Below are positions 15,290-58,546 of a DNA stretch of 64,000 bases, in pieces. The notes beneath the pieces were generated by a model. That model did not search any database, was not told the DNA's origin, and saw nothing but the letters and a program-made list of their open reading frames with translations. Source of the stretch: Podarcis liolepis (taxonomy: Eukaryota); the NCBI GenBank assembly GCA_965112155.1, contig OZ218105.1; one strand, given 5' to 3'. Numbering within the stretch: position 1 is the first letter of the stretch; every line of letters begins with the position of its first letter. Made by a program: the position numbers and the translations under genes.

Positions 15290-17692
15290 CTGGACTATGA
15301 TTAAGCCTTCATTGTTCAAGTTTAAATCTTCACCAGGTAGGATAGGATCCTTTGCTTCACAAGCCTCTTTATTGTTCAGAGTATTGGAATAATTTGCCTT
15401 CCTAGAGTCTGTAGTGAGAGAAACCTCCTGGCAGTAGGAGTGCAGAAATGCTCGGACTCCGTCAATCCCCACAAACTGTGAGATAGGAGCGCCACTGAAA
15501 TTCACACTCCCCGTCTCAAGCAGCTGAGAATTTCTCCACTTGTGCAACTTGATGGCCAGTAACACAAGGAGGAAAGTGAAGAACAAGCAAGAGACAAAAG
15601 CCACTGCAAGGACCAGGTAGAAGGTGAGGTCAGACGGAGGATCTACAGGAGCTGAGATGCTGCTCAGGTCTGAGAGGATTGCAGGGATGGTGTCAGCCAG
15701 CACCACAGTCAGAGTGGCTGAAGCAGAGAGAGGTGGCTGCCCATTGTCCTTGACTAAAACCACCAGGCTTTGCTTGAGGGCATCTTTCTCCAGAAAGAAG
15801 CGGGCCGTCCTGATCTCTCCTGTGTGGAGCCCCAGAGTGAAGAGCCCTGGCTCGGTGGCCTTGATCAGCTGGTAGGAGAGCCAGGCATTCTGGCCAGAGT
15901 CCGCATCCACGGCCACCACCTTAGTGACCAGGTAGCCTGGCTCAGAGGAGCGAGGGGCCAGCTCTATCCCTGTGGAGCCATCAGTGGGAGGGGAGGGGTA
16001 CAGGATTTGGGGAGCATTGTCATTCTGGTCCAGGATGAAGAGAGTCACCGAGACGTTGGAACTGAGTGATGGAGAGCCTCCGTCCTGGGCCTTTACACGG
16101 AACCGAATGTCTCGAAACTCTTCATAATCAAAGGAGGTCACAGCATATATAACCCCCGTCTCAGAGTTAATGGAGAGGTAGGAGGAGAGGCGGGAGTCAC
16201 TTCTTTGGTCATCAGTGATGGAATATGTTATTCTGGCATTTTCTTCCCAGTCAAGATCATTTGCTCTTAAGGAAGAGACCATCGCTCCTCTTTGGTTATT
16301 CTCAACAAAATAGAAAGTATAGTCTGTTTTTTCAAAGAGGGGTGGGTTGTCATTTGTGTCTAAAACATGAAGTGTGATAACTGTGACGGCAGAAAGAGGG
16401 GGCACTCCATGGTCAGTAACAGTGACAGTAATATTGAAGACTGACACCTGTTCTCTGTCAAGGGCACCATCAGTCACCAAACTGTAAAAGTTATCCATGG
16501 ACTTCTTTAGCTGGAAAGGGAGGTTGCTAGGGATTGAACATGTGATTTCCCCATTGATTCCTGAATCTCTGTCTTGGACATTTAAAATGGCAATTACCGT
16601 TTGGGATGGTGAACTTTCAAGTATGGTGTTGGTGGCAAAGGTAATTGATAATTCGGGGGCATTGTCATTCAGATCTGTAACAGATATCACAACTTTTGAT
16701 TTGTCACTCAGGCCTCCTCCATCTTTGACTTGTATTTCAAATGCATATAAAGATGATTCCTCATAATCAAGATTCCCAATAAGGATGATTTCACCAGTTG
16801 TGGAATTTAACAGAAACATTTGGGAGTCTCGCTTTGTGATTTTTTGGAAAGAGTATTTAATGTCTCCATTGATTCCTTCATCCATATCAGTGGCTCTCGC
16901 TGTCAAAACTGTGGACCACTTGGGGATATTCTCACTGACACTCACTTCATAGAGAGGTTGGCTGAAAACTGGTGCATTGTCATTTGCATCCAGGACAGTG
17001 ATGTGGATTTGTAATGTGCCAGATCTGATGGGATCACCTCCATCAGTAGCTATGAGGAGCAGATCATAAGCTGATTGTTCCTCTCTGTCCAGTGACTTTT
17101 CCAATACAAGTTCAGCAAGTCTGGCACCATTTTCTTCTGTTTGCACATGCAAAGCAAAATGGCTACTGCCTGTGAGTTGGTAGCTCTGCACTGAATTTAT
17201 CCCCCAATCTGGATCTTGAGCTTCGGGAAGAGAGATCTGGAATCCAGGTATAGATGCCTCACTGATTTCCAGCTCCTGTTCCCATAGAGGGAAGTGGGGA
17301 GCATTATCATTTATATCCGTAATTTCCACTTCAATTCCATAAAGCTTCAGTTTGCTTTCAACAAGAACCTGAAACTTCAACAAACATTTCTCTGCCTCTC
17401 TGCAGATTTCCTCTCTATCTATTCTCTCAGATATCTGCAAATGGCCATTGTTGGCATTCAAAGAAAAGTACTGAATCATACCTACAGGGGAAACAATGCG
17501 GAGTCCATGGTCTGGGAGCTGCTTGCCATCCATTCCCAGGTCCTTTGCAATATTCCCCACGGAAGAGCCTTTGTGCATCTCTTCTGGAATGGAGTAGTGG
17601 ATCTGCCCAGAAACTGCCTTCCAAGAAAACATCATGAAAAGGCACTGGAAGATTCCCTTTCTGCAATTCCACAGCCTCTGAATTCCTTTCAT
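15290..17692 (-). CDS. PCDHGA: Protocadherin gamma-A-like variable exon (gene 3; 801 codons, starts MKGIQRL)
   Basis: ATG at 17690-17692 aligns with paralog starts (the ORF track starts earlier at a TTG); donor CAG|GTGAGC at 15284-15289, phase 0. Confidence 0.92.
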
Positions 17693-17891
17693 CCTTGCAG
17701 CAGGATAAAGACTAAAGACCCTTAGATTCTGGTTCAAAAGATACTGTATCTAACTCTTCTCTAAGGAAAATGCACTTCCATTTCTTCTTTGCACCGACAA
17801 GCAGCTTGTTCCTTCAGATATTTTGTGTTTGTGTTTAACGGAAAGGCAACTTCAATTGGTCAGGATTTCACATTTCTGCTCCGTTCTGGTC

Positions 17892-17924
17892 AACAGTGAC
17901 ACCCAGAGGATCAAGCCCAAACTG
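17892..17924 (-). promoter_or_regulatory. CSE / CTCF site of gene 3 (CACT variant)
   Basis: + strand AACAGTGACACCCAGAGGATCAAGCCCAAACTG, 200 bp upstream of the ATG. Confidence 0.8.
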
Positions 17925-19586
17925 CAAAAACTTCACTTTTGAAAATTAAATAAACACCATTTCACTGTACTATTATATTATAATATTATAAATATTATAA
18001 ATGAAGATATGGCTAGGATAACTATGTATATTTTTCTATATTCTTTATTTTTTTCCTTCAAATTTACCCACTATAGATAAAGAAGAGTGACAACTTTTGC
18101 TGTTGTAAACAAACTGAAATGGAGCAGGAAAGACAAGTGTGTTTAGGGTTCCTGCCCTACCCCATTACTGGAAATTCTGGAATGAATTGAATTCTGAAAT
18201 ATTGAACTTTCTCAGCAATGTTCTTTGCTGGATATTCAAAAGATTCATTTTGGATGCAGAAAAAAGAATAGTAAGGCTCTGGTACTTCTTATTTTCTTTG
18301 TGTCAGTGTAATGTTTGTAGTTGTAAAGTGAGGGAACTGATATGCTGACACACAGTTCTTTCCTGCTGTTTTCATGGGGAAACAGAGGCATCCATGTGCA
18401 GAAAGGCTGACAGAGTTGCGGCATTAGCCAATGACACTCATTGTTGTGTGATACCAAATACACTGGTGTGCATGAAATTCAGCACAACTTGCTGGTATAT
18501 CAGTCAAAAACCACAGTTCCTTAGCACAGCAGGTACCACAGTGAAAAGAACAGGACAGAAATGCTGCCATTAAACGCAGGAAAAATAACTAGTGCAATAT
18601 TCCCCACAAATTTGAATGCAGCCTCTCCCCCTACCCCAGTATCATAACATTGATCTACTTTTCTGGGTTATTGTAAGAGTTGCGCAGCACTATATGTGAA
18701 GCGCCTTGAACATTCTTAACACTAGGTATTACTGCACAGAGCAAAGAAGTAAAATGGCCACATTCTCTGTAATTTATTGCCACTGCTTATCTGGAAAGGG
18801 CTGGGCTTCAGTCACGGCAAGGTTAGGGCCATGTAGGTGCACCAGCAGGAATGCCAGATTGGTTGCTGACAGATGCATACAGACCCAGCCACACCGCTGC
18901 CTCATCCACAGCTCCAGCTTATCACAAACACCACTACTGTGGATGGATAACATTCAATGGCAGCTTAGAAGCACACATGTGCAAACTGGATGTCAAACTC
19001 AGAAGAGAGCTTTATTAAAAACTAGCATGTGAGGGCTTGTTAAACAGCAGAGGTAGGTGGTTTTCGGCCATCTTCGTTAGAGAGCTTGATGTTGTGCTTG
19101 ATGTTGTACAAGATTAAACTGCTAAAACTGAATTTGGCCATTAGCAGGAGGGACAAGACACTGAATTATCCACTGGATAATGCCAACAAATGTTCTTTTA
19201 ACATTAGTCTTCATCTTTCCTAATGGACTATACACTGGTGGTGAATATGACCCAGCTTTAAAGTACAGCAATTACAGGATGTGCAGATGTATGTCCTGGC
19301 CAGATTGACTCTCCATAAGAAAACATTCCATGCCAAAGAGTTAAAAGGGCATCTGCCATTGGTAGCTGTGACTCAATAGTCATTTGTCCCCTATATTTCT
19401 ACAGTATGGAAGCATGACTAGAGATGGTATAAGTAGAAATACTAACCACATGCTCCACATCCACACATCCTTACATACAAAGTGTTCACTACAACTGTTA
19501 CAATTTGTCATAATCTCTAATGCAAATGCCAAGGAAAGGAATGCCAGTACTTTGGGATTGCATCCACACTGGACATCAGTAATATA

Positions 19587-19828
19587 CAGTGGTACCTCAG
19601 GTTAAGTACTTAATTCATTCTGGAGGTCCCTTCTTAACCTGAAACTGTTCTTAACCTGAATCACCACTTTAGCTAATGGGGCCTCCCGCTGCTGCTGAGC
19701 CACCGGAGCCCAATTTCTGTTCTTTTCCTGAAGCAAATTTCTTAACCTGAAGCACTATTTCTGGGTTAGCGGAGTGTGTAACCTGAAGCGTATGTAACCG
19801 GAAGTGTATGTAACCCAAGGTACCACTG
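19587..19828. mobile_element. Tigger-like MITE, same family as 9464-9686
   Basis: TIR CAGTGGTACC...GGTACCACTG; TA TSD; absent from unit B. Confidence 0.85.
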
Positions 19829-20894
19829 TATAAGACCTGTACAGGACCTGGCCAGGGCAGGAGCCCGGGGGGGGGCAGGGGATAGTTTCGGGTTCATGAT
19901 ACGGTCATGTTTGGTTTAGGGTATTTGTCAATTCAGGGACCATTTCCAGTATATACATATCTTGGAAGCCGGGGGATATGTGCATATTATTTAATTTTTT
20001 ATTTAAAATAATTCTAGAGTCCCCCCCCCACTACCCCCCCCACAAAGAGTGGTATACAGCATCTCTAGAAATCATGCCAAGAGAAACTCCCTTTTGATGT
20101 CACTCTTCTACACAGGTTTTACATGAGCATTTTTCATTCTACAAACAGCATGCAGTCACAGGACCTAAGAAATGCTTGTACAACTGATAGCTTCCATCAA
20201 AGCTCCACCACTTAATATGTTGTGCTATTCTCATCAGACCCAAATCCCAAGCTGTGTCTGTGACAGGAACACAGTATCCAAATGCTATGTAAGATTATTT
20301 GTATATATGAGAACCAAATCAAGTTATTCTAAAACGTTTGGTGATTAATTAATCCTTTACTCTTATTAAATAATCCAACCCATAAAAAGCTCCACAAACA
20401 CTTCCTAAAATTCAGTTGAAAAACTTTACCAATTACTAAGAAATTTACCAACTTATTTAAAGAATATTCTATGAAAGACTTTTTGGTATTTCTTCTTGTA
20501 AATTTCTTAAAGGACAGAATGTGAAAATAGCTACATATTCAATTGCATTTGTACTGCAAAGATAAGAAGAAGAAGAAAACATCATTCTCTCCACTCAGCC
20601 ATGCTGCACCACTCTGTGATCTTAGCACGACACCGAGTTACCATGCAGATGTGTACCTGGACAATTCTGACAGAGCCTCCGCCATCCTGCTGTGCTGCCC
20701 CTCAATAGCTGCTGGAAAGTCCAATTAGCTTGCTCTACAGCAGTAGCAGCTCAATACTACTCCCTACCTACTTCCCTGATGACATGGTCTGAATTCTCTG
20801 GGATGCCAGTTTGAAAACATCCACTGTTTACAATTAAACTCTCAAACAAGTGATAACACCAAATTCCCTATAAGGAACATGCAATATAACTCAC

Positions 20895-23324
20895 CGTGCT
20901 GTCATTTTCCTTTTCAGAAATTAAACTGCCTCCACTGACCATCAAAGAAATGTCAGAGTTGCCATTGCAAAGGATGTTCTCTGCTATTTGGACAGTGGGC
21001 TGCAGGAATGTCAGCTCATTCCTCCTGGATTCAGAGGACAGACAGACCTGGTAGGAATAAGGCAAAGTTCCGTCCTCATAATTGGGTGGGAATATGGCAC
21101 CAGCCTTTGAGTGGGGGTCAGGAATAAAGCACTGAAGGAAAGTGGGGTTCCTTGACCTTCGAAGCTTCATCAGAATGGTCAGTATCACCGTCACCAGGAA
21201 CAAAAAGGACACCAAGGTCAAGGCCAATACTAAATAAAACTGTAGATCAGACTGATACTCTGAGTCATTTGGTTGGGAGTTCATTTCTGGAAGAGCCTCC
21301 TGGAAGTTCTCAGCAAACACCAGGCTCAAAGTTGTGGTGGCTGAGAGAGGAGGATGCCCATTGTCCTTCACCAGGATGACCAGCCTCTGCTTCACTGCAT
21401 CTCTCTCAAGTAAAGCTCGGACTGTTTGCACCTCTCCTGTGTGGGAGCCAATGCTGAAGAGTGAGGGCTCTGTGGCCTGCAGGAGATGGAAGGAGAGCCA
21501 GGCATTGTGTCCAGAATCAGAGTCCACGGCCACCACCTTCGTCACCAGATAACCCGACTCAGCTGACCGAGGCACCATCTCAAAGAAAGGTGAGCCCTCT
21601 GTTGATTGTGAGGGGTACAGGATCTGCGGAGCGTTATCATTTCGATCCAAAACACATACTGTCACTGTGGCACTGCTATTGAGTGGTGGAGAACCTCCAT
21701 CTTGGGCCTTCACTTGAATCTGAAACTCCCTGAATTGCTCATAGTCAAAGGAGCGTTGGGCATAGATGATCCCAGTCTCAGAGTTAATGGAGACATAGGA
21801 GGAGAGAGGCAGGTCCTTGATGTTGCTGTGAAGGATGGAGTAAGTGATTCTGGCATTGCGATCCAGATCTGGGTCGGAGGCCTTGATGTGGAAAATTGAA
21901 GCTCCAGATGGATTGTTCTCTGGAACATAGGCAGTGTAGGAAGATTTGTCAAAGGCTGGTGGGTTATCATTGATATCTGAGATCTGTATTGATATGGTTT
22001 TGTGTGTGGAGAGTGGAGGTGTGCCTTTGTCTGTGGCTGTGATTGTAATATTATACTCGGGAGTCCTTTCTCTGTCAAGAGCACCATCTATGAGGAGCTT
22101 GAAGTAATTATCCGAGGATGAGACTATCAGGAAAGGTACAAGTTCCTTCAGGTGACAGGTGACTTCTCCGTTATCCCCAGAGTCCCTGTCCTGAACTTTA
22201 ATGAGAGCAATCACAGCTCCAGAAGTGACATCTTCAGGAACTGGGCTGGACACGGATGTAAGGATCACATCTGGAGCATTGTCATTCTCATCAAGAACCT
22301 CAATCTCCACATTGCAATGTGCCGCCAAGCCTCCTCCATCACTTGCCTTAATTATCATCAAATATTTTTGTCTGTCCTCAAAATCAACACTTTCTATAAG
22401 TGTAATTGTTCCATCTCTGGGATCCAGATGAAACCTCTGCTCAGCTGTTTCTGCGATGTCACTGAAAGTATAAGTGATCTCAGCATTGGACCCTTCATCA
22501 CTGTCAGATGCTTTGACTTGAAGCACAGAGGTTCCTTTGGGTGCACTCTCCTTCAGGCTCACTTTATAGATTGTCTGGGTGAAAACAGGGGCATTGTCAT
22601 TAGCATCAAGAACTGTTACCAATATTTTGGCTGTCCCGGTTTTTGGAGGTTCTCCACCATCCATGGCTGTAAGGACCATGTGGTGCACATGTTCTTTTTC
22701 CCTGTCCAGTTGTTTCTGCAATACTAATTCTGCATATTTGCCACCATTATTGCTGTTTTGAATTTCCAACTTGAAATATGGAATTGAGCTCAATTGATAA
22801 TTCTGCAGGGAATTTGTTCCAATGTCTTTATCTTCAGCATTTCCAAGAGCAAATCGAGTTCCTGGCAGAGTAGACTCACTCAATTTAAGCTCAACATTTT
22901 CATTCCGGAAATATGGGGCATTGTCATTAATGTCCTGGATAAAAATATTTACGTGGAAGATATTCAAAGGATTGTGTGCCACAACTTCTAATTTGAGGAC
23001 ACAAGTGGATGATTCCCCACAAATCTCTTCCCGGTCTATCCTCTCATTCACATACAGGTTGCCATTTTGTTCATTCAGATCAAAGAATTGCTTTTCTGAA
23101 GAAATACCAAGCTTGCGCTTTGACAGCTCTCTGACATCCAACCCCAGATCTTTAGCAAGGTTCCCCACAAAGGAGCCCTGCTCTGCTTCCTCTGGAACTG
23201 AATACTGAACCTTCTCAGACCCCACCTGGCAGAAGAACACAGACCAGAATATGAACAGAAACAGTACTTGCCTCCTGGTGATCTTCCTTGTTCTCTCTGC
23301 CTGCTTTACTTCCATCACATCCAT
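20895..23324 (-). CDS. PCDHGB: Protocadherin gamma-B-like variable exon (gene 4; 810 codons)
   Basis: Same architecture as gene 1; donor ACG|GTGAGT at 20889-20894. Confidence 0.93.
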
Positions 23325-23563
23325 TGCCTTTCCTGATTTCTTCCTGCTTTCAGTACAGTTTTCAAGACTCCCAGTACAATTATTTGAGATAATAGAAATA
23401 TTCTTCTTTTCAGCTGATTCTTGGGAAACTGAGAGCTTTCCTTTCTTGAGCAGCTTTTAAAATAAAAGCTTTTCCTTTCTGCTCAGCTGAAGTGTTAAGA
23501 GAGAGAGAGAGATTGCTCCAAGAGTCTCGGAAATGCTGAGCCATGGCTGCTCCCACGTTGTCC

Positions 23564-23596
23564 AACAGTGACACTCTGAGTCCACATGGGGAACTG
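23564..23596 (-). promoter_or_regulatory. CSE / CTCF site of gene 4 (CACT variant)
   Basis: Identical to the gene 1 CSE. Confidence 0.8.
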
Positions 23597-23900
23597 TATT
23601 TGCTTATTTTCATGTTTATAATTCTATATTGCTATTTCCCCCTAATATCTATGGAGAATTGTGAATGACTAAAAATTCTTTCACTGGTTGTCCAAATGTA
23701 CTTTAGTATCGCTTGATTAGAAGTCACATAAGCTTAATTCAGATTTGTTTTTCATTGCATACAAACTGTTATTTTAATATTTTATTGCTTTTCCTGGTAG
23801 ATGATAATGACACTTTAGGGTGTTTTTGATGGAGCATAAACACAAGCAGTTGCCAGCAGAAGAAAACCATGCAATAATTCAGAAAGCCTACATCCCTGCC

Positions 23901-24113
23901 TAGGGCTGCCATACGTTCGGATTTCCCTGGACGTTACTGGGATTTCAAAGGCGGAATTGACATCTTGGGGGAATTTCCAAAAGTTGGCGCTTTGTCCTCG
24001 TTCTTAGGCAAGTCAATCACAAAATCACGGTTTTAGGGGTGTTTTTGTCTAGAAAAAGCTCAACAACTTTCACGTTTTCCTAAAAACAATTGTGGGATGC
24101 CCTGGCAACCCTA
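23901..24113. mobile_element. hAT-type MITE
   Basis: TIR TAGGGCTGCCA...TGGCAACCCTA; perfect 8-bp TSD TCCCTGCC. Confidence 0.85.
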
Positions 24114-24861
24114 TCCCTGCCAGAATTCTGGTGATTTGGCCTTTATTTAATTATGAACTTGTTTTAATTTTTAAAATTTGTTCTGTCTTTAAGATTTTGG
24201 TGCATTGTGTGCTTTATTTCTGTTCTATTGGCCATAATAAAATGCTGAAAAAGAAATTTAAATTCACTTTAGCACAGGATAACTCTTTCATTCTTTAGTC
24301 TTATGCATATTCATTTGACATTTTTCTCATATGTTTGTAATCTTCCCTGTGGCATCTGGCTGGCCACTGCTGCACTAGAGGAAGTTTTGGGTGATACATC
24401 TTTCCTTACGATTCTGTGTGATGATTCCTAATTCCTTAGGTGGTGAATTATTCAATATTCTCCCTTTGACTTTTTTGGATGCTTTTCAATGGTATTTCCC
24501 AAGAAGACCCATATGATCCTTTTGAATAATTGGTTTTTCGTTTCTGTTTTCATAGTATTGGTACTTAATTCTATTCAACCTTTGATAGTAAGATTTTATT
24601 ACAGTTTTTACATTACAATCCTATACCAACTTACCTGGGTATAAATTCCATTGAAGTCAATGAGACTTATATCTGAAGATAAAAGATTTGTTAGATGTAT
24701 TGAGTTTTTTTATTGCTTTGGCATATGTGGAAGTTTACTGTAATTAATCAGGAATGTTTATGACATGAAGAAAAAGCTTCTACATAAGTGCACTCAAAGT
24801 GTGCACTACTCTGCCAGAATTTCAGTTTGTCAGACTGTAAACTGAAATGTAATAATTAATC

Positions 24862-24894
<33 letters not shown>

Positions 24895-24904
24895 ACAGTA
24901 GTAG
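24862..24904. repeat. (TAG)n microsatellite
   Basis: Direct inspection. Confidence 0.9.
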
Positions 24905-25307
24905 TTTTGAACTGAGAACTTTCTTTCTGCCACTATTGTATCAGTGCAGAGCCATTCAGCGGAGAGGATTTGAGTGATAAGAAACTTTCTTTTGGGGGTC
25001 TAAGATATATCCAGAACTGCTTATATCCACTCTTGACTTGAATGCAATCATAGATTCGGAATGATTTTCTATCATTCTATCGGTCTTATTGTTGATATTA
25101 ATTTGATAGGTTAAATTCTTATTACCTGAAATGTGGAGTTATCAGTGAATAGTAACACCATTGTCCAGAATAGAAAGATTAGCCAAATGCATAGACTAAA
25201 ACACAATGCATACGCATAGCAAAATGAATCTATATTTGACTAATCCAGCAAGGATTATTTGACCAGTCCAGCAAGGTAGATTAGAGGATGGATGCCTCCT
25301 TCTGGCA

Positions 25308-25429
25308 CAGGCATCCCCAAACTCGGCCCTCCAGATGTTTTGGGACTACAACTCCCATCATCCCTAGCTAGCAGGACCAGTGGTCAGGGATGATGGGAAT
25401 TGTAGTCCCAAAAACATTTGGAGGGCCTG
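25308..25429. mobile_element. Palindromic hAT-type MITE
   Basis: Long internal inverted repeat (ggccctccagatgttttgggactacaactcccatcatccct); 8-bp TSD TTCTGGCA/TTCTAGCA. Confidence 0.8.
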
Positions 25430-26149
25430 TTCTAGCACATGGCTCCTGGTATGGGATTGGGAACTGTAATGCAGGCAGGATAGGGCAGCTATTTCAGCAT
25501 GCAATTCCCATCAGCACTCAAAGGGCATATAGCAACACTTCCCTTTCCTTCCAGGCTTAGAGGTACTTTATGCTACTGTGAGCAATTATTACTTGCACAT
25601 AACTAGGCACAAGTTGCACCTATTTAAGAATAGTGGTTGGCAAAGAGAACCAGAAGATCATGTTACCACAGGAAAATGTATTTCTTTGTTCAAAATAGGT
25701 TCATCTCAGCTTTTAGTCCAGGGACTTCCAAATGAAATGAATGAATGAATGAATGAATGAATGAAAACAATTAATCAACCAACAGGGAGGTGGAAGAAAT
25801 AATTGACAGTGTAATTGAACACAGAGGTATTCACAGCCTGTCACTTAATGAGGGGGGCAATCAGACTTCCCAAGGGGGAGGCATTCCACAACAGAACAGA
25901 ACAGGGGGCCAGAGGTAATCCGCCAGGGGCCGTATGCAGATGCTGGGCAAGACAAAAGCCAGTGGTGGACAGGGCTGAAGCCAAATGTGGGCACAGTCGG
26001 GGGGGGAGGGGTCAAGACAAAAAAATAGACCACCCCTTTCCCCCCTCTTTCTGCTACCTTCTTTCCCCCTCTTTTCCCCTCCTTGCCACTCACCAAAGTG
26101 AGAAGACCACCCACTGTGCCTTCTGGCTTGTGTCCCAGGCAATCAGACC

Positions 26150-26328
26150 TTCAGTTGCCATGTTTCAAACAGTGAAAATCCGGACAGAAAAGTTGTTGGG
26201 CAAGATCGCAACTGCCAACATGGGCTGCCATACGCCCGGATTTTCCCCAACATTTTTCTGATTTCTGCCCAGATGATGCTGTCAAATTTTGGATATGTCT
26301 TGGAAATTCTGGATATATGGCAACCCGA
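26150..26328. mobile_element. hAT-type MITE related to 23901-24113
   Basis: GTTGCCA...TGGCAACCC ends and shared internal motifs; no clear TSD. Confidence 0.6.
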
Positions 26329-26663
26329 CAGAACACAGAGCAAGGCCTATGATGAGAAATAAATACAGTGGGCAGGCTGGTTTGTGTAGGTAGTTTGTCA
26401 AATATCCTGCACAGAGCCAAACCACAATAAATTTCAAATATAAAATCCTTACTGTCACGTAAGCCCCAGTGGTTTAAGAAAAGACAGATTGAAACCAATA
26501 AAGATTTCCCCAACTAGTAAAATAAGATACTAGCTATAAGTGGAATAAAATAATTACCAACATGTCTAATTGCTTTGAAAAGGGTCAAGAAAAGAGATGA
26601 ATGGAAAATTTATCTGTCAAGATTTGTAACTACATTTACAATTAGAAGAAAAAGTTAGCACAC

Positions 26664-27028
26664 CTGGCCTCTGATTTCATTTCCATTGTTCCAATCTAAA
26701 TCCCCAGTAGCAAAAATAGGATCCTTTACCTCCTAGGCTTGATCATTGGTTGCGGTATGGAAATAATTTGCCCTGGAAGTGTTAAACTGGTTTTTTCATA
26801 AAGTCAGTGGTAAGAGAAAGATCATCACAATAAGAGTAAATAAATGCTTGGATTCCATCAATAGCCACAAACTGTGAGACAGGAGCACCACTGAAATTCA
26901 CACTCCTTGACTCAAACAGCTGCAGTTTTCTCCATCTGTGCAACCTGATGACCACTAACACGAGGAAAGTGATGAACAAGCAGGAAACAAAAGCCACTGC
27001 AGTCACCAGGTAGATGAGATATGGCTGA
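26664..27028 (-). pseudogene. Relic 3' end (TM plus variable cytoplasmic segment) of a gamma-A variable exon, copy A
   Basis: [57 protein letters not shown], followed by a frameshift and stop; degenerate donor CAG|GTGTGC; no EC domains upstream. Confidence 0.88.
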
Positions 27029-30430: not shown

Positions 30431-30621
30431 CCTTGCAGCAGGTTAAAGGCCCTTAGATTCTGGTTCAAATGATGCTGTATGCAATTTTTTTTAAGAAAAA
30501 TGCACTTCCATTGCTTCTTTACACTGACAAGCAGCTTGTTCGTTCAGATATTTTGTGTTTGCGTTTAACGGAAAGGCAACTTCAATTGGGCAGGATTTCA
30601 CATTTCTGCTCCGTTCTGGTC

Positions 30622-30654
30622 AACAGTGACACCCAGAGGATCAAGCCCAAACTG
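30622..30654 (-). promoter_or_regulatory. CSE / CTCF site of pseudogene 6 (CACT variant)
   Basis: Identical to the gene 3 CSE. Confidence 0.8.
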
Positions 30655-32508
30655 CAAAAACTTCACTTTTGAAAATTAAATAAACACCATTTCACTGTAC
30701 GGTACTATTATATTATAATATTATAAATATTATAAATGAAGATATAGCTAGGATAACTATGTATATTTTTCTATATTCTTTATTTTTTTCCTTCAAATTT
30801 ACCCACTATAGATAAAGAAGAGTGACAACTTTTTTGTTGTTGTAAACAAACTGAAATGGAGCAGGAAAGACAAGTGTGTTTAGGGTTCCTGCCCTACCCC
30901 ATTACTGGAAATTCTGGAATGAATTGAATTCTGAAATATTGAACTTTCTCAGCAATGTTGTTTGCTGGATATTAAAAAGATTCATTTTGGATGCAGAAAA
31001 AAGAATAGTAAGGCTCCGGTACTTCTTATTTTCTTTGTGTCAGTGTAATGTTTGTAGTTGTAAAGTGAGGAAACTGATATGCTGACACACAGTTCTTTCC
31101 TGCTGTTTTCATGGGGAAACAGAAGCATCCATGTGCAGAAAGGCTGACAGAGTTGCGGCATTAGCCAATGACATTCATTGTTGTGTGATACCAAATACAC
31201 TGGTGTGCATGAAATTCAGCACAACTTGGTGGTATATCAGTCAAAAACCACAGTTCCTTAGCACAGCAGGTACCACAGTGAAAAGAACAGGACAGAAATG
31301 CTGCCATTAAACGCAGGAAAAATAACTAATGCAATATCCCCCACAAATTTGAATGCAGCCTCTCCCCCTACCCCAATATCATAACATTGATCTACTTTTC
31401 TGGTTTATTGTAAGAGTTACACAGCACTATATGTGAAGCGCCTTGAACATTCTTAACACTAGGTATTACTGCACAGAGCAAAGAAGTAAAATGGCCACAT
31501 TCTCTGTAATTTATTGCCACTGCTTATCTGGAAAGGGCTGGGCTTCAGTCACGGCAAGGTTAGGGCCATGTAGGTGCACCAGCAGGAATGCCAGATTGGT
31601 TGCTGACAGATGCATACAGACCCAGCCACACCGCTGCCTCATCCACAGCTCCAGCTTATCACAAACACCACTACTGTGGATGGATAACATTCAATGGCAG
31701 CTCAGAAGCACACATGTGAAAACTGGATGTCAAACTCAGAAGAGAGCTTTATTAAAAACTAGCATGTGAGGGCTTGTTAAAGAGCAGAGGTAGGTGGTTT
31801 TCGGCCATCTTCGTTGGAGAGCTTGATGTTGTGCTTCTTGTTCTACAAGATTAAACTGCTAAAACTGAATTTGGCCATTAACAGGAGGGACAAGACACTG
31901 AATTATCCACTAGATAATGCCAACAAATGTTCTTTAACATTAGTCTTCATCTTTCCTAATGGAATATACACTGGTGGTGAACATGACCCAGCTTTAAAGC
32001 ACAGCAATTACAGGATGTGCAGATGTATGTCCTGGCCAGATTGACTCTCCATAAGAAAACATTCCATGCCAAAGAGTTAAAAGGGCATCTACCATTGGTA
32101 GCTGTCACTCAATAGTCATTTGTCACCCATATTTCTACAGTACGGAAGCATGACTAGAGATGGTATAAGTAGAAATACTAACCACACGCTCCACATACAC
32201 ACATCCTTACATACAAAGTGTTCACTACAACTGTTACAACTTGTCATAATTTCTAACAATATAATGCAAATGCCAAGGAAAGGAATGCCAGTACTTTGGG
32301 ATTGCATACAGGACCTGGCCAGGGCTGGGGCTGGGGGGGCAGGGGATAGTTTCGGGTTCATGATACGGTCATGTTTGGTTTAGGGTATTTGTCAATCCAG
32401 GGACTATTTCCAGTACCGGTATATACATATCTTGGAAGTGGGGGGATATGTGCATATTATTTAATTATTAATTAATTTAAAATAAATCTATAGTCCCCAC
32501 CACCACTA

Positions 32509-32541
<33 letters not shown>

Positions 32542-33378
32542 GAGTGGTATGCAACATCTCTAGAAATGCCAAGAGAAACTCCCTTTTGATGTCACTCTTC
32601 TACACAGGTTGTACATGAGCATTTTTCATTCTACAAACAGCATGCAGTCACAGGACCTAAGAAATGCTTGTACAACTGATAGCTTCCATCAGAGCTCCAC
32701 CACTTAATATGTTGTGCTATTCTCATCAGACCCAAATCCCAAGCTGTGTCTGTGACAGGAACACAATATCCAAATGCTGTGAAAGATTATTTGTATATAT
32801 GAGAACCAAATCATGTTATTCTAAAATGTTTAGTGATTAATTAATCCTTTCATTAAATAATCCAATCCATAAAAAGCTCCGCAAACACTTCCTAAAATTC
32901 AGTTGAAAAACTTTACCAATTACTAAGAAATTTACCAACTTATTTAAAGAATATTCTATGAAAGACTTTTTGGTATTTCTTCTTGTAAATTTCTTAAAGG
33001 ACAGAATGTGAAAATAGCTACATATTCAATTGCTTTTGTACTGCAAAGATAAGAAGAAGAAGAAAACATTCTCTCCACTCAGCCATGCTGCACAACACTG
33101 TAATCTTAGCATGACACCGAGTTACCATGCAGATGTGTACCTGGACAATTCTGACAGAGCCTCCGCCATCCTGCTATGCTGCCCCTCAATAGCTGCTGGA
33201 AAGTCCAATTAGCTTGCTCTACAGCAGTAGCAGCTCAATACTACTCCCTACCTACTTCCCTGATGACATGGTCTGAATTCTCAGGGATGCCAGTTTGATA
33301 ACATCCACTGTTTACAATTAAACTCTCAAACAAGTGATAACACCAAATTCCCTATAAGGAACATGCAATATAACTCAC

Positions 33379-35808
33379 CGTGCTGTCATTTTCCTTTTCA
33401 GAAATTAAATTGCCTCCACTAACCATCAAAGAAATGTCAGAGTTGCCATTGCAAAGGATGTTCTCTGCTATTTGGACAGTGGGCTGCAGGAAAGTCAACT
33501 CATTTCTCCTGGATTCAGAGGACAGACAGACCTGGTAGGAATAAGGCAAAGTTCCATCCTCATAATTGGGTGGGAATATGGCACCAGCCTTTGAATGGGG
33601 GTCAGGAATAAAGCACTGAAGGAAAGTGGGGTTTCTTGACCTTCGAAGCTTCATCAGAATGGTCAGAATCACCGTCACCAGGAACAGAAAGGACACCAAG
33701 GTCAAGGCCAATACCAAATAAAACTGTAGATCAGACTGATACTCTGAGTCATTTGGTTGGGAGTTTATTTCTGGAAGAGCCTCCTGGAAGTTCTCAGCAA
33801 ACACCAAGCTCAAAGTTGTGGTGGCTGAGAGAGGAGGATTCCCATTGTCCTTCACCAGGATGACCAGCCTCTGCTTCACTGCATCTCTCTCAAGTAATGC
33901 TCGGACTGTTTGCACCTCTCCTGTGTGGGAGCCAATGCTGAAGAGTGAGGGCTCTGTGGCCTGCAGGAGATGGAAGGAGAGCCAGGCATTGTGTCCAGAA
34001 TCAGAGTCCACGGCCACCACCTTCGTCACCAGATAACCCGACTCAGCTGACCGAGGCACCATCTCAAAGAAAGGGGAGCCCTCGGTTGATTGTGAGGGGT
34101 ACAGGATCTGCGGAGCATTATCATTTCGATCCAAAACACATACTGTCACTGTGGCACTGCTATTGAGTGGTGGAGAACCTCCATCTTGGGCCTTCACTTG
34201 AATCTGAAACTCCCTGAATTGCTCATAGTCAAAGGAGCGTTGGGCATAGATGATCCCAGTCTCAGAGTTAATGGAGACATAGGAGGAGAGAGGCAGGTCC
34301 TTGATGTTGCTGTGAAGGACGGAGTAAGTGATTCTGGCATTGCGATCCAGATCTGGGTCAGAGGCCTTGATGTGGAAAATTGAAGCTCCAGATGGGTTGT
34401 TCTCTGGAACGTAGGCAGTGTAGGAAGATTTTTCAAAGGCTGGTGGGTTATCATTGATATCTGAGATCTGTATTGATATGGTTTTGTGTGTGGAGAGTGG
34501 AGGTGTGCCTTTGTCTGTGGCTGTGATTGTAATATTATACTCTGGAGTCCTTTCTCTGTCAAGGGCACCATCTATCAGGAGCTTGAAGTAATTACTCGAA
34601 GATGATACTATCAGGAAAGGTACAAGTTCCTTCAGGTGACAGGTAACTTCTCCATTATCCCCAGAATCCCTGTCCTGAACTTTAATGAGAGCAATCACAG
34701 CTCCAGATGTGACATCTTCCGGTACTGGGCTGGACACGGATGTAAGGATCACATCTGGAGCATTGTCATTCTCATCAAGAACCTCAACCTCCACATTGCA
34801 ATGTGCCGCCAATCCTCCGCCATCACTTGCCTGAATTTTCATCACATATTTTTGTCTGTCCTCAAAATCAACACTTTCTATAAGTGCAATTGTTCCATCT
34901 CTGGGATCCAGATGAAACTTCTGTTCAGCTGTTTTTGGGATGTCACTGAAAGTGTAAGTGATCTCAGCATTGGACCCTTCATCACTGTCAGATGCTTTGA
35001 CTTGAAGCACAGAGGTTCCTTTGCGTGCACTCTCCTTCAGGCTCACTTTATAGTTTGCCTGGGTGAAAACAGGAGCATTGTCATTAATATCAATAACTGC
35101 AACCAATATGTTGGCTGTTCCGGTTTTTGGAGGTTCTCCACCATCCATGGCTGTAAGGACCATGTGGTGCATCTGTTCTTTTTCCCTGTCCAGTTGTTTC
35201 TGCAATATTAATTCTGCATATTTTCCGCCATCATTGCTGTTTTGAATTTCTAGTTTGAAATATGGAGTTGAGCTTAACTGATAATTCTGGAGGGAGTTTA
35301 TTCCAATATCATCATCTTCAGCGTTTCCAAGAGCAAATCGAGTTCCCGGCAGAGTAGATTCACTAAATTTAAGCTCAATATTTTCATTCCGGAAATGTGG
35401 GGCATTATCATTAATGTCCTGGATAAAAATATTTACGTGGAAAATATTCAAAGGATTGTGTGCCACAATTTCTAATTCGAGGACACAAGTGGATGATTCC
35501 CCACAGATCTCTTCCCGGTCTATCCTCTCATTCACATACAGGTTGCCATTTTGTTCATTCAAATCAAAGAATTGCTTTTCTGAAGAAATACCAAGCTTGC
35601 GCTTTGACAGCTCTCTGACATCCAACCCCAGATCTTTAGCAAGGTTCCCCACAAAGGAGCCCTGCTCTGCTTCCTCTGGAACTGAATACTGAACCTTCTC
35701 AGACACTACCTGGCAGCAGAACACAGACCAGAATATGAACAGAAACAGTACTTGCCTCTTGGTGATCTTCCTTTTTCTCTCTGCCTGCTTTATTTCCATC
35801 ACATCCAT
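33379..35808 (-). CDS. PCDHGB: Protocadherin gamma-B-like variable exon (gene 7; 810 codons)
   Basis: Same architecture as genes 1 and 4; donor ACG|GTGAGT at 33373-33378. Confidence 0.93.
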
Positions 35809-36045
35809 TGCCTTTCCTGATTTCTTCCTGCTTTCAGTACAGTTTTCAAGACTCCCAGTACACTTATTTGAGATAATAGAAATATTCTTCTTTTCAGCTG
35901 ATCCTTGGGAAACTGAGAGCTTTCCTTTCTTGAGCAGCTTTTAAAATAAAACCTTTTCCTTTCTGCTCAGCTGAAGTGTTAAGAGAGAGAGAGATTGCTC
36001 CAAGAGTCTCGGAAATGCTGAGCCATGGCTGCTCCCATGTTGTCC

Positions 36046-36078
36046 AACAGTGACACTCTGAGTCCACATGGGGAACTG
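36046..36078 (-). promoter_or_regulatory. CSE / CTCF site of gene 7 (CACT variant)
   Basis: Identical to the gene 1 and gene 4 CSEs. Confidence 0.8.
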
Positions 36079-36383
36079 TATTTGCTTATATTCATGTTTA
36101 TAATTCTATATTGCTATTTTCCCCTGATATCAATGGAGAATTGTGAAGGACTAAAAATTCTTTCACTGGTTGTCCAAATGTACTTTAGTATCGCTTGATT
36201 AGAAGTCACATAAGCTTCATTCAGATTTGTTTTTCATTGCATACAAACTGTTATTTTAATATTTTTATTGCTTTTGCTGGTAGATGATAATGACACTTTA
36301 GGGTATTTTTGATGTAGCATAAACACAAGCAGTTGCCAGCAGAAGAAAACCATGCAATAATTCAGAAAGCCTACATCCCTGCC

Positions 36384-36596
36384 TAGGGCTGCCATACGTT
36401 TGGATTTCCCTGGACGTTACTGGGATTTCAAAGGCGGAATTGACATCTTGGGGGAATTTCCAAGAGTTGGTGCTTTGTCCTCGTTCTTAGGCAAGTCAAT
36501 CACAAAATCACGGTTTTAGGGGTGTTTTTGTCTAGAAAAAGCTCAACAACTTTCAGGTTTTCCTAAAAACAATTGTGGGATGCCCTGGCAACCCTA
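36384..36596. mobile_element. hAT-type MITE, duplicated copy of 23901-24113
   Basis: Same TIRs and same TCCCTGCC TSD, so it inserted before the duplication. Confidence 0.85.
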
Positions 36597-37305
36597 TCCC
36601 TGCCAGAATTCTGGTGATTTGGCCTTTATTTAATTATGAACTTGTTTTAATTTTTTAAATTTGTTCTGTCTTTAAGATTCTGGTGCATTGTGTGCTTTAT
36701 TTCTGTTCTATTGGCCATAATAAAATGCTGAAAAAGACATTTAAATTCACTTTAGCACAGGATAACTCTTTCATTCTTTAGGCATGCATATTCATTTGAC
36801 ATTTTTCTCATATGTTTGGTATCTTCCCTGTGGCATCTGGCTGGCCACTGCTGCATCCAACATGGGCTGCCATACGCCCGGATTTCCCCCAACATTTTTC
36901 TGATTTCTGCCCAGATGATGCTGACAAATTTTGGATATGTCTAGGAAATTCTGGATATATGGCAACCTGACAGAACACAGAGCAAGGCCTATGATGAGAA
37001 ATAAATACAGTGGGCAGGCTGGTTTGTGTAGGTAGTTTGTCAAATATCCTGCACAGAGCCAAACCACAATAAATTTCAAATATAAAATCCTTACTGTCAC
37101 GTAAGCCCCAGTGGTTTAAGAAAAGACAGATTGAAACCAATAAAGATTTCCCCAACTAGTAAAATAAGATACTAGCTATAAGTGGAATGAAATAATTACC
37201 AACATGTCTAATTGCTTTGAAAAGGGTCAATAGAAGAGATAAATGGAAAATTTATCTGTCAAGATTTGTAACTACATTTACAATTAGAAGAAAAAGTTAG
37301 CACTC

Positions 37306-37670
37306 CTGGTCTCTGATTTCATTTCCACTGTTCCAATCTAAATCCCCAGTAGCAAAAATAGGATCCTTTACCTCCTAGGCCTGATCATTGGTTGCGGTAT
37401 GGAAATAATTTGCCCTGGAAGTGTTAAACTGTTTTTTTCATAAAGTCAGTGGTAAGAGAAAGATCATCACAATAAGAGTAAATAAATGCTTGGATTCCAT
37501 CAATAGCCACAAACTGTGGGACAGGAGCACTACTGAAATTCACACTCCTTGACTCAAACAGCTGCAGTTTTCTCCATCTGTGCAACCTGATGACCACTAA
37601 CACGAGGAAAGTGATGAACAAGCAGGAAACAAAAGCCACTGCAGTCACCAGGTAGATGAGATATGGCTGA
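37306..37670 (-). pseudogene. Relic 3' end of a gamma-A variable exon, copy B (duplicate of 26664-27028)
   Basis: Near-identical to copy A; the donor GT is destroyed here (CAG|GAGTGC). Confidence 0.88.
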
Positions 37671-38669
37671 TTCCCCACCCCACCCCGTCTCCGGTAATGG
37701 TGTTTCTCTTTGGCAGGATCAGGAAGGTATAGGCAGTTTGGGGGACTGCACTGACAGATGGGATGGGCTGCAGTGGGATGGGATGGAAAAGGATTGGATT
37801 TCTCCATGGCTTCAGTGTGGAGTGCCCTCCATTCCCCTGCTGAGGAACTGCTCTGAATTTCCCTCCTTGCCCAAGGACCTCATTCTTTCATGGTGTCTGT
37901 TTTAATGCTCCATTCCCTGAGCTTCTCTCGTGATTCGTGTTCCAAGCGTGTCAGCCCCCCACACCAAGCATTGATGCCCCACCCGCTGAAAACCTTTCTT
38001 GTTGCATGCAACCCCCACAGTTTGGGGTTAGAGTCCTCGCTTTTTTGTATTATATATATTAAAAAAAAATCCCCTGACATTTAAAATAAACTCCCTTTGT
38101 GGTTTTTTTTTTGTTTTTGTTTTTTGTTAACACAAAATGTAATGAAGCTGTGTCCATCTATCCTTCCTCCCTGTTCCCTCCCTCACCCCACATCTTTCCT
38201 TCTCCCATGCACCCTTTCTGGATCTGTGTTTCAACAGCAAAAGATTTTAGTAAAAACATTGAAGGAAAAAAATCCACAAAAAATAAAAAGAGCCTCCAAG
38301 CCCAGATGAATATGCAGATGTGGAGGGTGCATGCAGCCCACTGGTTATCCACCTCTGTGCTACAGCCATGGAGAGAGAGCCCTGCTACCAAAAGCTCTGG
38401 TAAACCAAACCGTTCTAGAGACCTTGTTCATCATTATTAAACAATGGCACTAGCAGCCTTCAGGAATGCATCCTTAGCTTTAGCTAAACATGCAAAGGAG
38501 GGGCCTCGGGAAGAGATGTGCAATCTACACCATGCTGTGGTTCTTCTTAGTCTCCCATTCCTGGATGGTGATTGCCTGAGCCAGGAAACCTTTTGTACTC
38601 AGAAAAGTTTCCTATGCATTTTAGAATACTGGGAGATCAAATAGGAAGTACTGAAACTTATGTGCTCAC

Positions 38670-41096
38670 CTGAGGGATTGCTGCCTCCTCCGTACCCGTG
38701 TTAGAATCACCTATGAGTAACACAGGGCCTGGCTTATCAGGAGCCTGTTGTGGTGTCAGAGTATTGGTACAGCTTCCGATTGGAAAAAGAATCTGACTTT
38801 TCCGAGAGCCTGAAGTCAGTGAAACCTCATGGCAATAAGACTGGAGAAATGCCCGGACTCCGTCAATCCCCACAAACTGTGAAACTGGTGCACCACTGAA
38901 ATTCAAACTTGCATTATCACACAGCTGAGAATTTTTCCACCTGCGAAGTTTGAGTGCCAATAACACAAGGAGGAAGGCGAGGAACAAGCAGGAGACAAAA
39001 GCCACTGCAGTCACCAAGTAGAAGGTGAGATCTGACTGTGGGTCTTCAGATACTGGGACGCTGCTCAGATCAGTCAGCATGTCAGGGATGCTGTCAGCCA
39101 AGACCACAGTGACAGTGACTGACGCCGACATTGGAGGCTGCCCATTGTCCTTGACTAAAACCACCAGGCTTTGCTTGAGGGCATCTTTCTCCAGAAAGAA
39201 GCGGGCCGTCCTGATCTCTCCCGTGTGGAGCCCCAGAGTGAAGAGCCCTGGCTCGGTGGCCTTGATCAGCTGGTAGGAGAGCCAGGCATTCTGGCCAGAG
39301 TCTGCATCCACGGCCACCACCTTAGTGACCAGGTAGCCTGGCTCAGAGGAGCGTGGGGCCAACTCTATCCCTGTGGAACCGTCGGTGGGAGGGGAAGGGT
39401 ATAGGATTTGGGGAGCATTGTCATTCTGGTCCAGGATGAAGAGAGTCACTGAGACGTTGGAGCTGAGTGGTGGAGAACCTCCGTCTTGAGCCTTAACCAG
39501 GAACTTAATCTCCCTGATCTCTTCATAGTCAAAAGAACACAGAGCATAGATGACCCCTGTCTCTGAGTTAATGGAGAGGTATGAGGAGAGAGGGGAGCCA
39601 GTCACTTGACTTTCTATGATGGAATAAGTTATTCTGGAGTTCTCTTCCCAGTCTGGATCATTTGCATTTAGAGAAAAGATGGATGCTCCTCTCTGATTAT
39701 TTTCCATGAAAAATGACTTGTAATCTGCTCTTGCAAAGTGAGGTGGGTTATCATTTGTGTCTAAAATGTGCAGAGCTATGATGGTGGCTGTAGAAAGAGA
39801 AGGCATTCCATGATCAGTTACTGTGATGGTGATGTTGTAGTTTGCCACTTGTTCTCTGTCAAGGGGGCCATCTGTCACCAAACTATAAAAGTTGTCTATG
39901 GATTGTTTTAGCTGAAACGGGAGGTTTCTGGGAATTGTGCATGTGACCTCACTATTTATTCCAGAATCGTGATCTTCTACATTTATAATAGCAATAACTG
40001 TTCCGGTTGATGAGTTCTCCTGAATGGAGTTGGTCAGAAAGGTCACAGTTAATTCTGGCGCATTGTCATTCAGATCTGTGACCATGATCACAACCTTTGA
40101 CCTGTCACTTAGACCACCCCCATCCATGGCTTGCACCTCAAATTCATAGAAGGATGATGTCTCAAAGTCCAAGTTCCCCATGAGGGTTATTATGCCAGTT
40201 GTTGAATTTAAAAGAAACATTTGTGAATCCTTTTTTGTGGTTTTTTTGAAGGAATATTTCACCTCTCCGTTGATTCCTTCATCCAGATCAGTGGCCTTGA
40301 CTGCACAGATTATGGACCCTTTGGGAATGTTCTCCTCAATGCTGATTTCATAGACTGGTTGGCTAAAAATTGGTGCGTTGTCATTTGCATCTAAAACAAT
40401 GACTTGAATTTGGGCAGTGCCAGTCCTGACAGGATCACCCCCATCCATAGCCATAAGAATTAGATCATAAACTGGCTGTTCCTCTCTGTCCAAAGATTTT
40501 TCCAGCACCAGCTCAGCATGTTTGGGGCCATTTTCTCCTGTTTGAACATCCAGAGAAAAATGCACGCTGCCTGTGAGTTGGTAATTCTGAACAGAATTTA
40601 TCCCCAGATCTGGATCAGTAGCCTCAGGCAGAGGAAACCGAGACCCTTTTATAGATATTTCATTAATTTTCACCTCCAGTTGTCCTGGAGGAAAGTGGGG
40701 AGCATTATCGTTTATATCAGTAACTTCCACTTCAACTCCATAAAGTTTTCTTTTACTCTCAACAATAACCTGAAAATTTAATTTGCACTTCTCTGCCCAT
40801 GCACAAATTTCTTCTCTGTCAATTCTCTCAGTGGTTTGTAAATGACCACTGTTGTAGTTCAAAGTAAAATACTGAATCATACCTGTTCTGGTAAGAATCC
40901 GGAGCTCGCGGTTTGAAAGATTATTTCCATCCATTCCTAGATCCTTTGCAATATTTCCCACAAAAGAGCCTTTCTGCATCTCCTCTGGAATGGAATAATG
41001 AAGTTGTGCAGAAACTGTCTTCAAAATGAACATCAATATGAGGCATTGCAACAAGATTGTCTCTTTACAGCTCCATTGCTTCTGATTTTCTCCCAT
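38670..41096 (-). CDS. PCDHGA: Protocadherin gamma-A-like variable exon (gene 8; 809 codons from MGENQKQW; in-frame upstream ATG at 41189)
   Basis: Six EC repeats, TM, gamma-A cytoplasmic motif; donor CAG|GTGAGC at 38664-38669. Confidence 0.92.
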
Positions 41097-41293
41097 TTTC
41101 TTGCAACAGGATAAATGCCACTTATTCTGGCTCAGACGTTTTTGAGTATGAAATAAATGCTGTTGTTTTTTATTTAAAGTTGCTCCCATTACACTCCCTG
41201 CAATGTGTGTGCAAGTATGGTCATGCAGATATGTTCTGTTTATACAGTAGAGAATTTATGGAACTCCCAGTGTGTTCTGTAGCCAAATTGGTG

Positions 41294-45655: not shown

Positions 45656-45948
45656 NNNNNNNNNNNNNNNNNNNNNNNNNNNNNNNNNNNNNNNNNNNNN
45701 NNNNNNNNNNNNNNNNNNNNNNNNNNNNNNNNNNNNNNNNNNNNNNNNNNNNNNNNNNNNNNNNNNNNNNNNNNNNNNNNNNNNNNNNNNNNNNNNNNNN
45801 NNNNNNNNNNNNNNNNNNNNNNNNNNNNNNNNNNNNNNNNNNNNNNNNNNNNNNNNNNNNNNNNNNNNNNNNNNNNNNNNNNNNNNNNNNNNNNNNNNNN
45901 NNNNNNNNNNNNNNNNNNNNNNNNNNNNNNNNNNNNNNNNNNNNNNNN
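45656..45948. other. Assembly gap (293 N)
   Basis: Run of n. Confidence 0.99.

Positions 45949-58499: not shown

Positions 58500-58546
<47 letters not shown>

Follow-up and report, generated by a model that had tools for sequence, protein, structure and literature searches.

Origin of a hybrid protocadherin gamma-A exon at the joint of a tandem duplication in the lizard Podarcis liolepis

Clustered protocadherins supply neuronal surface identity, and their repertoire varies between vertebrate lineages. Unequal crossover is the accepted source of growth of these clusters by tandem duplication (PMC4151104). The locus considered here raises the question of how a variable exon with the ectodomain type of one neighbour and the cytoplasmic tail type of another could have come to lie between the two. 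It is contained in a 64,000-nucleotide stretch (referred to as the window) of contig OZ218105.1, assembly GCA_965112155.1, of the lizard Podarcis liolepis, and consists of two tandem units whose joint lies inside a gamma-A variable exon, gene 6. A preliminary description, made from the sequence alone, had interpreted this arrangement as the outcome of unequal crossover between the ancestors of the flanking exons, genes 3 and 8, through a block of homogenised sequence that encodes the end of extracellular cadherin domain EC5 and most of EC6. On the evidence set out below, we consider one such crossover to be the best explanation of the locus, and a probable one.

Two tandem units and the joint between them

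The features on which the argument rests are as follows (window positions; Y and X denote the gene-3 type and the gene-8 type, respectively).

15290-17692, minus strand: gene 3 (g3), gamma-A variable exon of 801 codons, 5'Y-3'Y, with a CAG|GTGAGC donor at 15290; the intact downstream parent
28007-30430, minus strand: gene 6 (g6), chimeric gamma-A exon on the duplication joint, 808 codons with one in-frame stop
38670-41096, minus strand: gene 8 (g8), gamma-A variable exon of 809 codons, 5'X-3'X; the intact upstream parent
16091-28829, minus strand: tandem unit I, 12,738 bp (10,622 bp without its two unit-specific segments)
28829-39492, minus strand: tandem unit II, 10,663 bp
20895-23324, minus strand: gB4, gamma-B exon of unit I, with open reading frame and donor
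33379-35808, minus strand: gB7, gamma-B exon of unit II, 810 codons, with phase-0 donor ACG|GTGAGT and Pfam matches
26758-27012, minus strand: relic of unit I, a transmembrane/cytoplasmic fragment (85 amino acids) of a dead protocadherin exon
37400-37654, minus strand: relic of unit II, a transmembrane/cytoplasmic fragment (85 amino acids) of a dead protocadherin exon
26215-28006, minus strand: intron flank downstream of gene 6, 1.8 kb, holding the relic of unit I
28473-28930, minus strand: homogenised EC5-end/EC6 block in gene 6 coordinates, codons 501-652
28559-28835, minus strand: interval of exchange from Y to X in gene 6, about 280 bp, by maximum chi-square
24375-26214, no strand assigned: 1.84-kb segment present in unit I only
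19564-19839, no strand assigned: 276-bp repeat element with inverted ends, present in unit I only

According to a three-way alignment map, each unit comprises the 3' half of a gamma-A exon, then a relic and a gamma-B exon, and finally the 5' half of a further gamma-A exon, and the region reads in transcription order gene 8, relic, gB7, gene 6, relic, gB4, gene 3. The same order had been given in the preliminary description and was recovered by self-BLAST, sliding identity and tblastn detection of the relics. Self-BLAST paired 15399-19563 with 28137-32307 (94.5% identity), 19840-24374 with 32307-36855 (95.7%) and 26215-30467 with 36857-41134 (88.5% overall). The non-coding DNA of the two units is 97-98% identical, with 108 differences in 3875 positions (2.8%) in the gene-3-type part of the flanks and 33 in 1782 (1.85%) in the gene-8-type part; gB4 and gB7 differ at 95 of 2457 bases and by 38 amino acids. 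The two relics are 98% identical to each other, and the one in unit II was detected by tblastn through 55% identity to residues 724-803 of gene 8. Both relics also have a Y-like tail, and the GGAG|GTAAAG that comes after it could serve as a donor. The downstream DNA of gene 8 in unit II directly abuts the DNA upstream of gB7, and for this reason the parts shared with gene 8 and with gene 3 are taken as one continuous unit. Dot-plot and sliding identity agree in giving two such units, with boundaries that fall within exons and a single joint, inside gene 6.

Unit I is the longer of the two because the 276-bp repeat and the 1.84-kb segment sit in it. The repeat, whose ends read ACAGTGGTACC ... 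GGTACCACTGT, has no counterpart at 32306/32307 in unit II, is found a second time in the window at 9461-9691 (74% identical) and is probably a small non-autonomous transposon. At the site corresponding to the 1.84-kb segment, the flanks in unit II meet with a single T between them (36855/36857). Transposon insertion is unsupported as an origin of this segment, which has neither a target-site duplication at its boundaries nor coding capacity.

Gene 6 itself is a mosaic. Its promoter region and EC1-EC5 are 95-98% identical to those of gene 3, as had been claimed, and its EC6 end, transmembrane segment, cytoplasmic tail and 1.8 kb of downstream intron are 95-99% identical to those of gene 8. In the three-way sliding comparison, gene 6 has an identity of 0.93-1.00 to gene 3 from position 32294 down to about 28700, whereas in the exon part 5' of the switch its identity to gene 8 is merely 0.7-0.79; between about 28800 and 28600 genes 3, 6 and 8 are all alike (0.95-0.99), and from 28600 down to 26300 gene 6 follows gene 8 (0.94-0.99) and not gene 3 (0.2-0.8). 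The resemblance to gene 3 extends upstream of the coding sequence. The 420 bases before the gene 6 ATG align to their gene 3 counterpart with about 20 scattered differences, and they include a conserved box which, by local alignment, precedes the ATG of each gamma-A exon by about 190-240 nt (in gene 3 at about 17880-17930). Gene 6 is the same as gene 3 throughout this box, a putative promoter element, whose core is CACT in these two genes and CGCT in the other gamma-A exons; the CpG of the latter core is absent from both.

The position of the switch was analysed by maximum chi-square on diagnostic sites, using two site sets and 2000 permutations. When all 531 sites informative between genes 3 and 8 were taken, the break fell between 28640 and 28559, with 366 Y to 36 X sites on its 5' side and 3 Y to 126 X sites on its 3' side. 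A strict set of 200 sites, at which gene 3 agrees with g2 and gene 8 agrees with g9 (two further gamma-A-like exons of the window, listed in the next section), placed the break between 28835 and 28826 (70:5, then 3:122). With neither set was the observed chi-square reached in any of the permutations. The switch at 28800-28850 reported in the preliminary description is therefore real, albeit it marks just the 5' edge of an exchange interval of about 280 bp. This interval (28835-28559) lies inside the EC5-end/EC6 block, as had been proposed; the block is 90-97% identical across all seven gamma-A exons, compared with 60-78% for EC1-EC4. Genes 3 and 8 differ at only 15 of the 358 positions from 28830 to 28473, and several of these differences are private to one lineage.

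Throughout the exon, gene 6 is colinear and in frame with both parents, without indel or frameshift, and its donor (CAG|GTGAGC at 28007) is intact. These properties bear on the way in which the joint was formed. Tandem duplications can arise by replication-based template switching that is independent of homology, in which case both ends would lie in exons by chance; nothing specific to the locus speaks for such an origin. Since the joint is in frame, connects two paralogous exons at equivalent, homologous positions, has no microinsertion or deletion and lies inside their highest-identity tract, we favour homologous recombination and regard template switching as very improbable.

The history that we propose would start from an ancestral array that, in transcriptional orientation, held gene 8, a relic, a gamma-B exon and gene 3. 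In one non-allelic homologous crossover, two chromatids would have paired out of register, gene 3 exon against gene 8 exon, and the crossover would have been resolved in the EC5-end/EC6 block, the sole near-identical stretch of both exons. The expected product is a tandem duplication of about 10.7 kb of the anti-Lepore type, with a gene 6 that combines the promoter and EC1-EC5 of gene 3 with the EC6 end, transmembrane segment, variable cytoplasmic tail, donor and downstream intron of gene 8. Anti-Lepore and Lepore delta-beta globin fusions are products of unequal crossover between tandem paralogues. It is from the in-frame, indel-free joint, the intact parents on either side and the roughly similar non-coding divergence of the two flank parts that we infer a single event, and to this extent the structure fits the earlier proposal.

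Exon identities and the fate of gene 6

All 11 long open reading frames of the window are on the minus strand, and 10 of them are protocadherin variable exons, each ending in a phase-0 splice donor. In addition to genes 3, 6 and 8, gB4 and gB7, they are the following.

6563-8965, minus strand: g2, gamma-A-like exon
46402-48825, minus strand: g9, gamma-A-like exon
53460-55889, minus strand: g10, gamma-A-like exon
60690-63104, minus strand: g12, gamma-A-like exon
1382-3811, minus strand: gB1, gamma-B-like exon

Genes 3, 6 and 8 have the layout expected of clustered protocadherin gamma-A variable exons, a single large exon for a signal peptide, six cadherin repeats, a transmembrane segment and a short variable cytoplasmic portion with a 5' splice donor at its end, and are assigned to this class on that basis. 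For gene 8 the reading starts at a methionine aligned with that of the other genes and ends at the CAG|GTGAGC donor at 38670; Pfam gives Cadherin_2, Cadherin (five stretches) and Cadherin_C_2, and the top match in PDB is gamma A9. Gene 6 was searched against proteins as two separate pieces, on either side of its stop; the first 510 amino acids match Cadherin_2 and Cadherin in Pfam. Exons gB1, gB4 and gB7 are nearer to gamma-B than to gamma-A proteins. In the case of gB7, PDB scores were 779 bits for gamma B4, 603 for gamma B2 and 566 for gamma A9, and protein identity between gamma-B and gamma-A exons within the window is 47-49%. The nearest annotated proteins of the window exons are from Podarcis, Lacerta and Zootoca, none of them above 96-97% identity, and in RefSeq models of relatives such exons are joined to a constant region to give isoforms of 935-943 amino acids. 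The remaining open reading frame (57764-59098, minus strand, 444 amino acids) is no cadherin gene. It is a GC-rich, low-complexity repeat (a 122-bp sequence present twice, with CCTG and TC runs) which runs on into a dead, truncated protocadherin exon (57776-57934) over roughly its first 50 codons.

On the 3' side of the block, the gamma-A exons fall into two groups: Y, with g2 and g3 (97.8% alike), and X, with g6, g8, g9, g10 and g12 (92-98%). The preliminary description had assigned the transmembrane segment, the tail and about 1 kb of intron of gene 6 to the gene 8 type. The type is right, but the tail is common to genes 6, 8, 9, 10 and 12 and the matching intron measures 1.8 kb; indeed, the coding 3' part of gene 6 is equally near to those of g8, g9 and g10 (96.6-96.8%). 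It is the flank that singles out a parent. In the dot-plot, 26215-28006 has a sole homologue in the window, the gene 8 flank at 36857-38669, and gene 8 is named as the parent of the 3' half because of this match, the X tail not being specific to it.

Two further observations concern the tails of other exons. The 3' coding parts of g8 (38670-39500), g9 (46402-47230) and g10 (53460-54290) are 98.2% alike, as against 96.6-96.8% to gene 6, and homogenisation among X-tail exons seems to have gone on without gene 6. In its Y tail, exon g2 (6563-8965) is 97.8% identical to gene 3, yet its EC1-EC4 are just 76% identical to those of gene 3; in this part no annotated lacertid protein exceeds 79% protein identity to it, and the nearest ones have X tails. 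This may be a second exon whose ectodomain and tail belong to different lineages.

Gene 6 carries the following lesion.

28898-28900, minus strand: premature stop at codon 511 of 808 in gene 6, GAG to TAG, private to gene 6

This stop lies some 65 bp 5' of the interval of exchange, and gene 6 has no other disabling lesion. The corresponding codon is GAG or GAA in all other gamma-A exons, and glutamate occupies the position in 10 of 10 gene-3-like proteins from five other lacertids (P. raffonei, P. muralis, P. lilfordi, L. agilis and Z. vivipara, which were compared as annotated proteins). When changes were polarised, 28 nonsynonymous to 23 synonymous changes were found in the gene 6 lineage and 14 to 29 in the parental lineages (Fisher P = 0.038); pairwise ratios of nonsynonymous to synonymous divergence (dN/dS) are 0.24 for g3-g6 and 0.14 for g6-g8. 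Because of the private in-frame stop and the raised proportion of nonsynonymous changes, gene 6 is probably a young pseudogene, and the simplest reading is that it was constrained for some time and lost its function recently. It is possible that the stop is a sequencing error or a segregating allele.

The term 'chimeric protocadherin' in the preliminary description thus says too much for a protein: the exon has a premature stop in this assembly, and none of the proteins annotated in the five lacertids combines a Y ectodomain with an X tail. A pseudogene would escape annotation as a protein, and the absence of the chimera from the five species is therefore weak evidence. A search of the protein collection with the piece of gene 6 that follows the stop (28007-28897), aimed at fragments crossing the joint, found nothing closer than 84%; ENA/JGI contig proteins at 61-65% identity, some of them possibly contaminants of mammalian or human origin, were left out of the comparison. 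One candidate for a second chimera, Zootoca isoform X12 (942 amino acids), was rejected, for it carries a variant of the Y-type tail in which 7 amino acids are inserted.

Divergence, gene conversion and rival histories

After the crossover, in the history proposed here, the copies would have diverged by 2-3%, unit I would have gained the 276-bp repeat, the 1.84-kb indel would have arisen and the exons would have kept exchanging sequence with other paralogues by gene conversion. A nonsense mutation in gene 6 would then have made it, most likely, a young pseudogene. With so much having accumulated, the earlier portrayal of a cluster expansion 'caught in the act' is too strong.

Several observations weigh against a single recent crossover. 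They concern (i) the divergence of the exons, (ii) the divergence of the flanks, (iii) the genes of related species and (iv) the sequence at the joint. With respect to the first, divergence at four-fold degenerate sites amounts to 9.6% for g3/g6, 7.2% for gB4/gB7 and 6.5% for g6/g8, compared with 2.5% in the flanks (5.7 kb), so that silent divergence in the exons exceeds that of the flanks 2.6- to 3.9-fold (P from 8e-7 to 6e-3). Moreover, 19 of the 34 amino-acid differences between genes 3 and 6 are states found in gene-3-like copies of other lacertid genera. Taken together, the raised silent divergence and the shared states mean that the exons do not have the history of a simple recent split. 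Decay of CpG dinucleotides was rejected as the cause, as non-CpG divergence is also higher in the exons; exon-specific hypermutation is an alternative cause of the excess. The three gamma-B exons are informative here. Their flanks group gB4 with gB7, and 63 exon sites, mostly in EC1-EC4, group gB1 with gB7, the two other groupings being supported by 32 and 28 sites. This points to gene conversion that is confined to the exon and extends to the specificity domains EC1-EC4, although such counts would also be obtained if gB4 had simply changed faster. We read the states shared by genes 3 and 6 with other genera in the same manner, as the result of conversion that went on with third-party paralogues as donors, some presumably located outside the window.

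The flanks and the relatives, together with these shared states, bear on a history in more than one step. An older duplication could have given two Y-tailed gene-3-like exons, and the 3' end of gene 6 and the DNA downstream of it would have become the gene 8 version later. One route is a long conversion tract or a double crossover, with the EC6 block and homologous DNA upstream of the gamma-B exon as anchors; the other is a deletion of Lepore type, by which a gene-3-like exon would have been fused to a second gene-8-like exon with loss of the intervening DNA. Both routes would end in the structure now seen. A point in favour of this history is that the two flank classes do differ slightly in divergence, the gene-8-type flank being the less diverged (Fisher P = 0.035), and an alternative grouping of the flank segments, a post hoc split, gives 2.0% against 3.0% (P = 0.017). 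However, the difference lies within the spread among flank segments (2.2-3.6%), which taken singly span 1.85-3.6%. In the five relatives, gene-3-like proteins form one 90% cluster with one to three members per species and at least two in 4 of the 5 species; all are Y-tailed, and their genes have near-adjacent accession numbers in P. muralis and L. agilis. Gene-8-like ectodomains of the relatives carry X tails. The Y-tailed gene-3-like genes allow for an older duplication and its subsequent remodelling. However, two or more events would be needed where one suffices, and the excess divergence of exons can be explained by conversion limited to the exons, of the kind seen directly in the gamma-B trio. 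The 1.84-kb segment offers a further check: if 24375-26214 were what remains of an original Y-type flank, it should resemble the downstream flank of gene 3 or of gene 2, but it has no similarity to either, and this identity was rejected. We consider a multi-step history unlikely, and a single unequal crossover remains our preferred explanation.

The remaining point against that explanation lies in the joint itself. Between 28715 and 28499 (216 bp) gene 6 has no private marker and is identical to several paralogues, so that a short-read assembler could misjoin sequences there. The structure would in that case be an artefact, a false join through the EC6 block either of two haplotypes or of two complete genes, one gene-3-like and one gene-8-like, whose intervening DNA was dropped, and the window does contain a run of N (45656-45948). 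This run is the only one, however, and lies outside the duplicated region: no N occurs within 16-40 kb, the joint, its surroundings and the boundary between the units all being free of gaps. Units I and II are set apart by 2-3% divergence and by the 1.84-kb and 276-bp indels, which is far above usual lizard heterozygosity, and the 38 amino-acid differences between gB4 and gB7 likewise argue against two alleles placed in tandem. Bases private to gene 6 at 28837, 28820 and 28793 bracket the strict switch (28835/28826) within 45 bp, and the switch therefore fits inside a single short read. Every other part of the units that is 97-98% identical was resolved by the assembly. In 20 sequencing runs, the fraction of sampled words that was present ranged from 0.21 to 0.59, a share that could arise with or without gene 6, as parents with 97-98% identity would alone give about half of the 31-letter words. 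An assembly artefact seems to us improbable.

A more general idea is that the EC5-end/EC6 block, beyond being a by-product of concerted evolution, is the preferred site of gamma-A crossover, leading to recurrent gain and loss of exons and to swaps of ectodomains onto X and Y tails, and that exon-limited conversion reaches EC1-EC4 of young duplicates. The preliminary description had gone in this direction in calling the block a built-in recombination cassette, a claim that, as it was worded, goes beyond the single event underlying it. We regard the general idea as doubtful. If it were true, the block and the conversion together would amount to a self-renewing engine of receptor diversity, traceable in lacertid genomes.

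Relation to known systems

The duplication provides a further, clean example of a textbook mechanism; the current view of how protocadherin clusters evolve is left unchanged. What the locus offers is resolution. Unequal crossover, gene conversion and degeneration are mostly deduced from trees, and all three can be followed here at base resolution in one 23-kb stretch, with a mapped crossover interval, a hybrid exon, later conversion confined to exons and early decay of the new copy. The locus is also a concrete place for asking whether the homogenised block is a recurrent breakpoint across lacertids.

A close parallel in structure is haemoglobin anti-Lepore, with which chimeric beta-globin genes (PMC4041002) may also be compared. 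In both cases an in-frame fusion links the 5' part of the downstream gene with the 3' part of the upstream one, the chimera lies between both intact parents and the intergenic unit is duplicated. The difference is that the partners here are not whole genes but alternative first exons of one multi-promoter cluster. Unlike a globin fusion, the lizard chimera places an ectodomain on another transmembrane segment and juxtamembrane tail, the constant exons being shared.

Tandem duplications by unequal crossover have been reported to be concentrated in the Pcdh clusters, and the duplicated exons are used (Kaneko et al. 2014; PMC4151104). The mouse Pcdh-alpha duplication of that study is an engineered one of 218 kb without a chimeric exon, unlike the lizard locus. 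In humans, deletion polymorphisms of 16.8 kb and 13.6 kb in PCDHA leave partially deleted variable exons (PMC8653519). They resemble the present case in that copy number changes in a clustered protocadherin array with ends within variable exons; they differ in that they affect the alpha cluster, whereas the lizard locus belongs to the gamma cluster, represents the duplication-side product and has its junction mapped to about 280 bp.

A further comparison is with the protocadherin cluster of another lizard, Anolis (Jiang et al. 2009; PMC2764143), in which gamma-a genes have low synonymous divergence (dS) in ECD5 and ECD6, tandem gene gain is frequent and 14 pseudogenes are present, half of them with single-nucleotide indels. 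Homogenised EC5/EC6, tandem gain and pseudogenes with single-nucleotide lesions (a probable one in Podarcis) are features of both lizards. In the Anolis study, gene conversion in EC5/EC6, degeneration and duplication specific to the lineage were deduced from trees and dS, with no crossover joint mapped and no chimeric exon described (PMC2764143). Unlike there, conversion in the Podarcis locus also appears to affect EC1-EC4 of near-identical gamma-B copies. As EC2-EC3 are usually described as untouched by conversion (PMC4978886), the gamma-B trio would be a mild exception to this rule, among very close copies.

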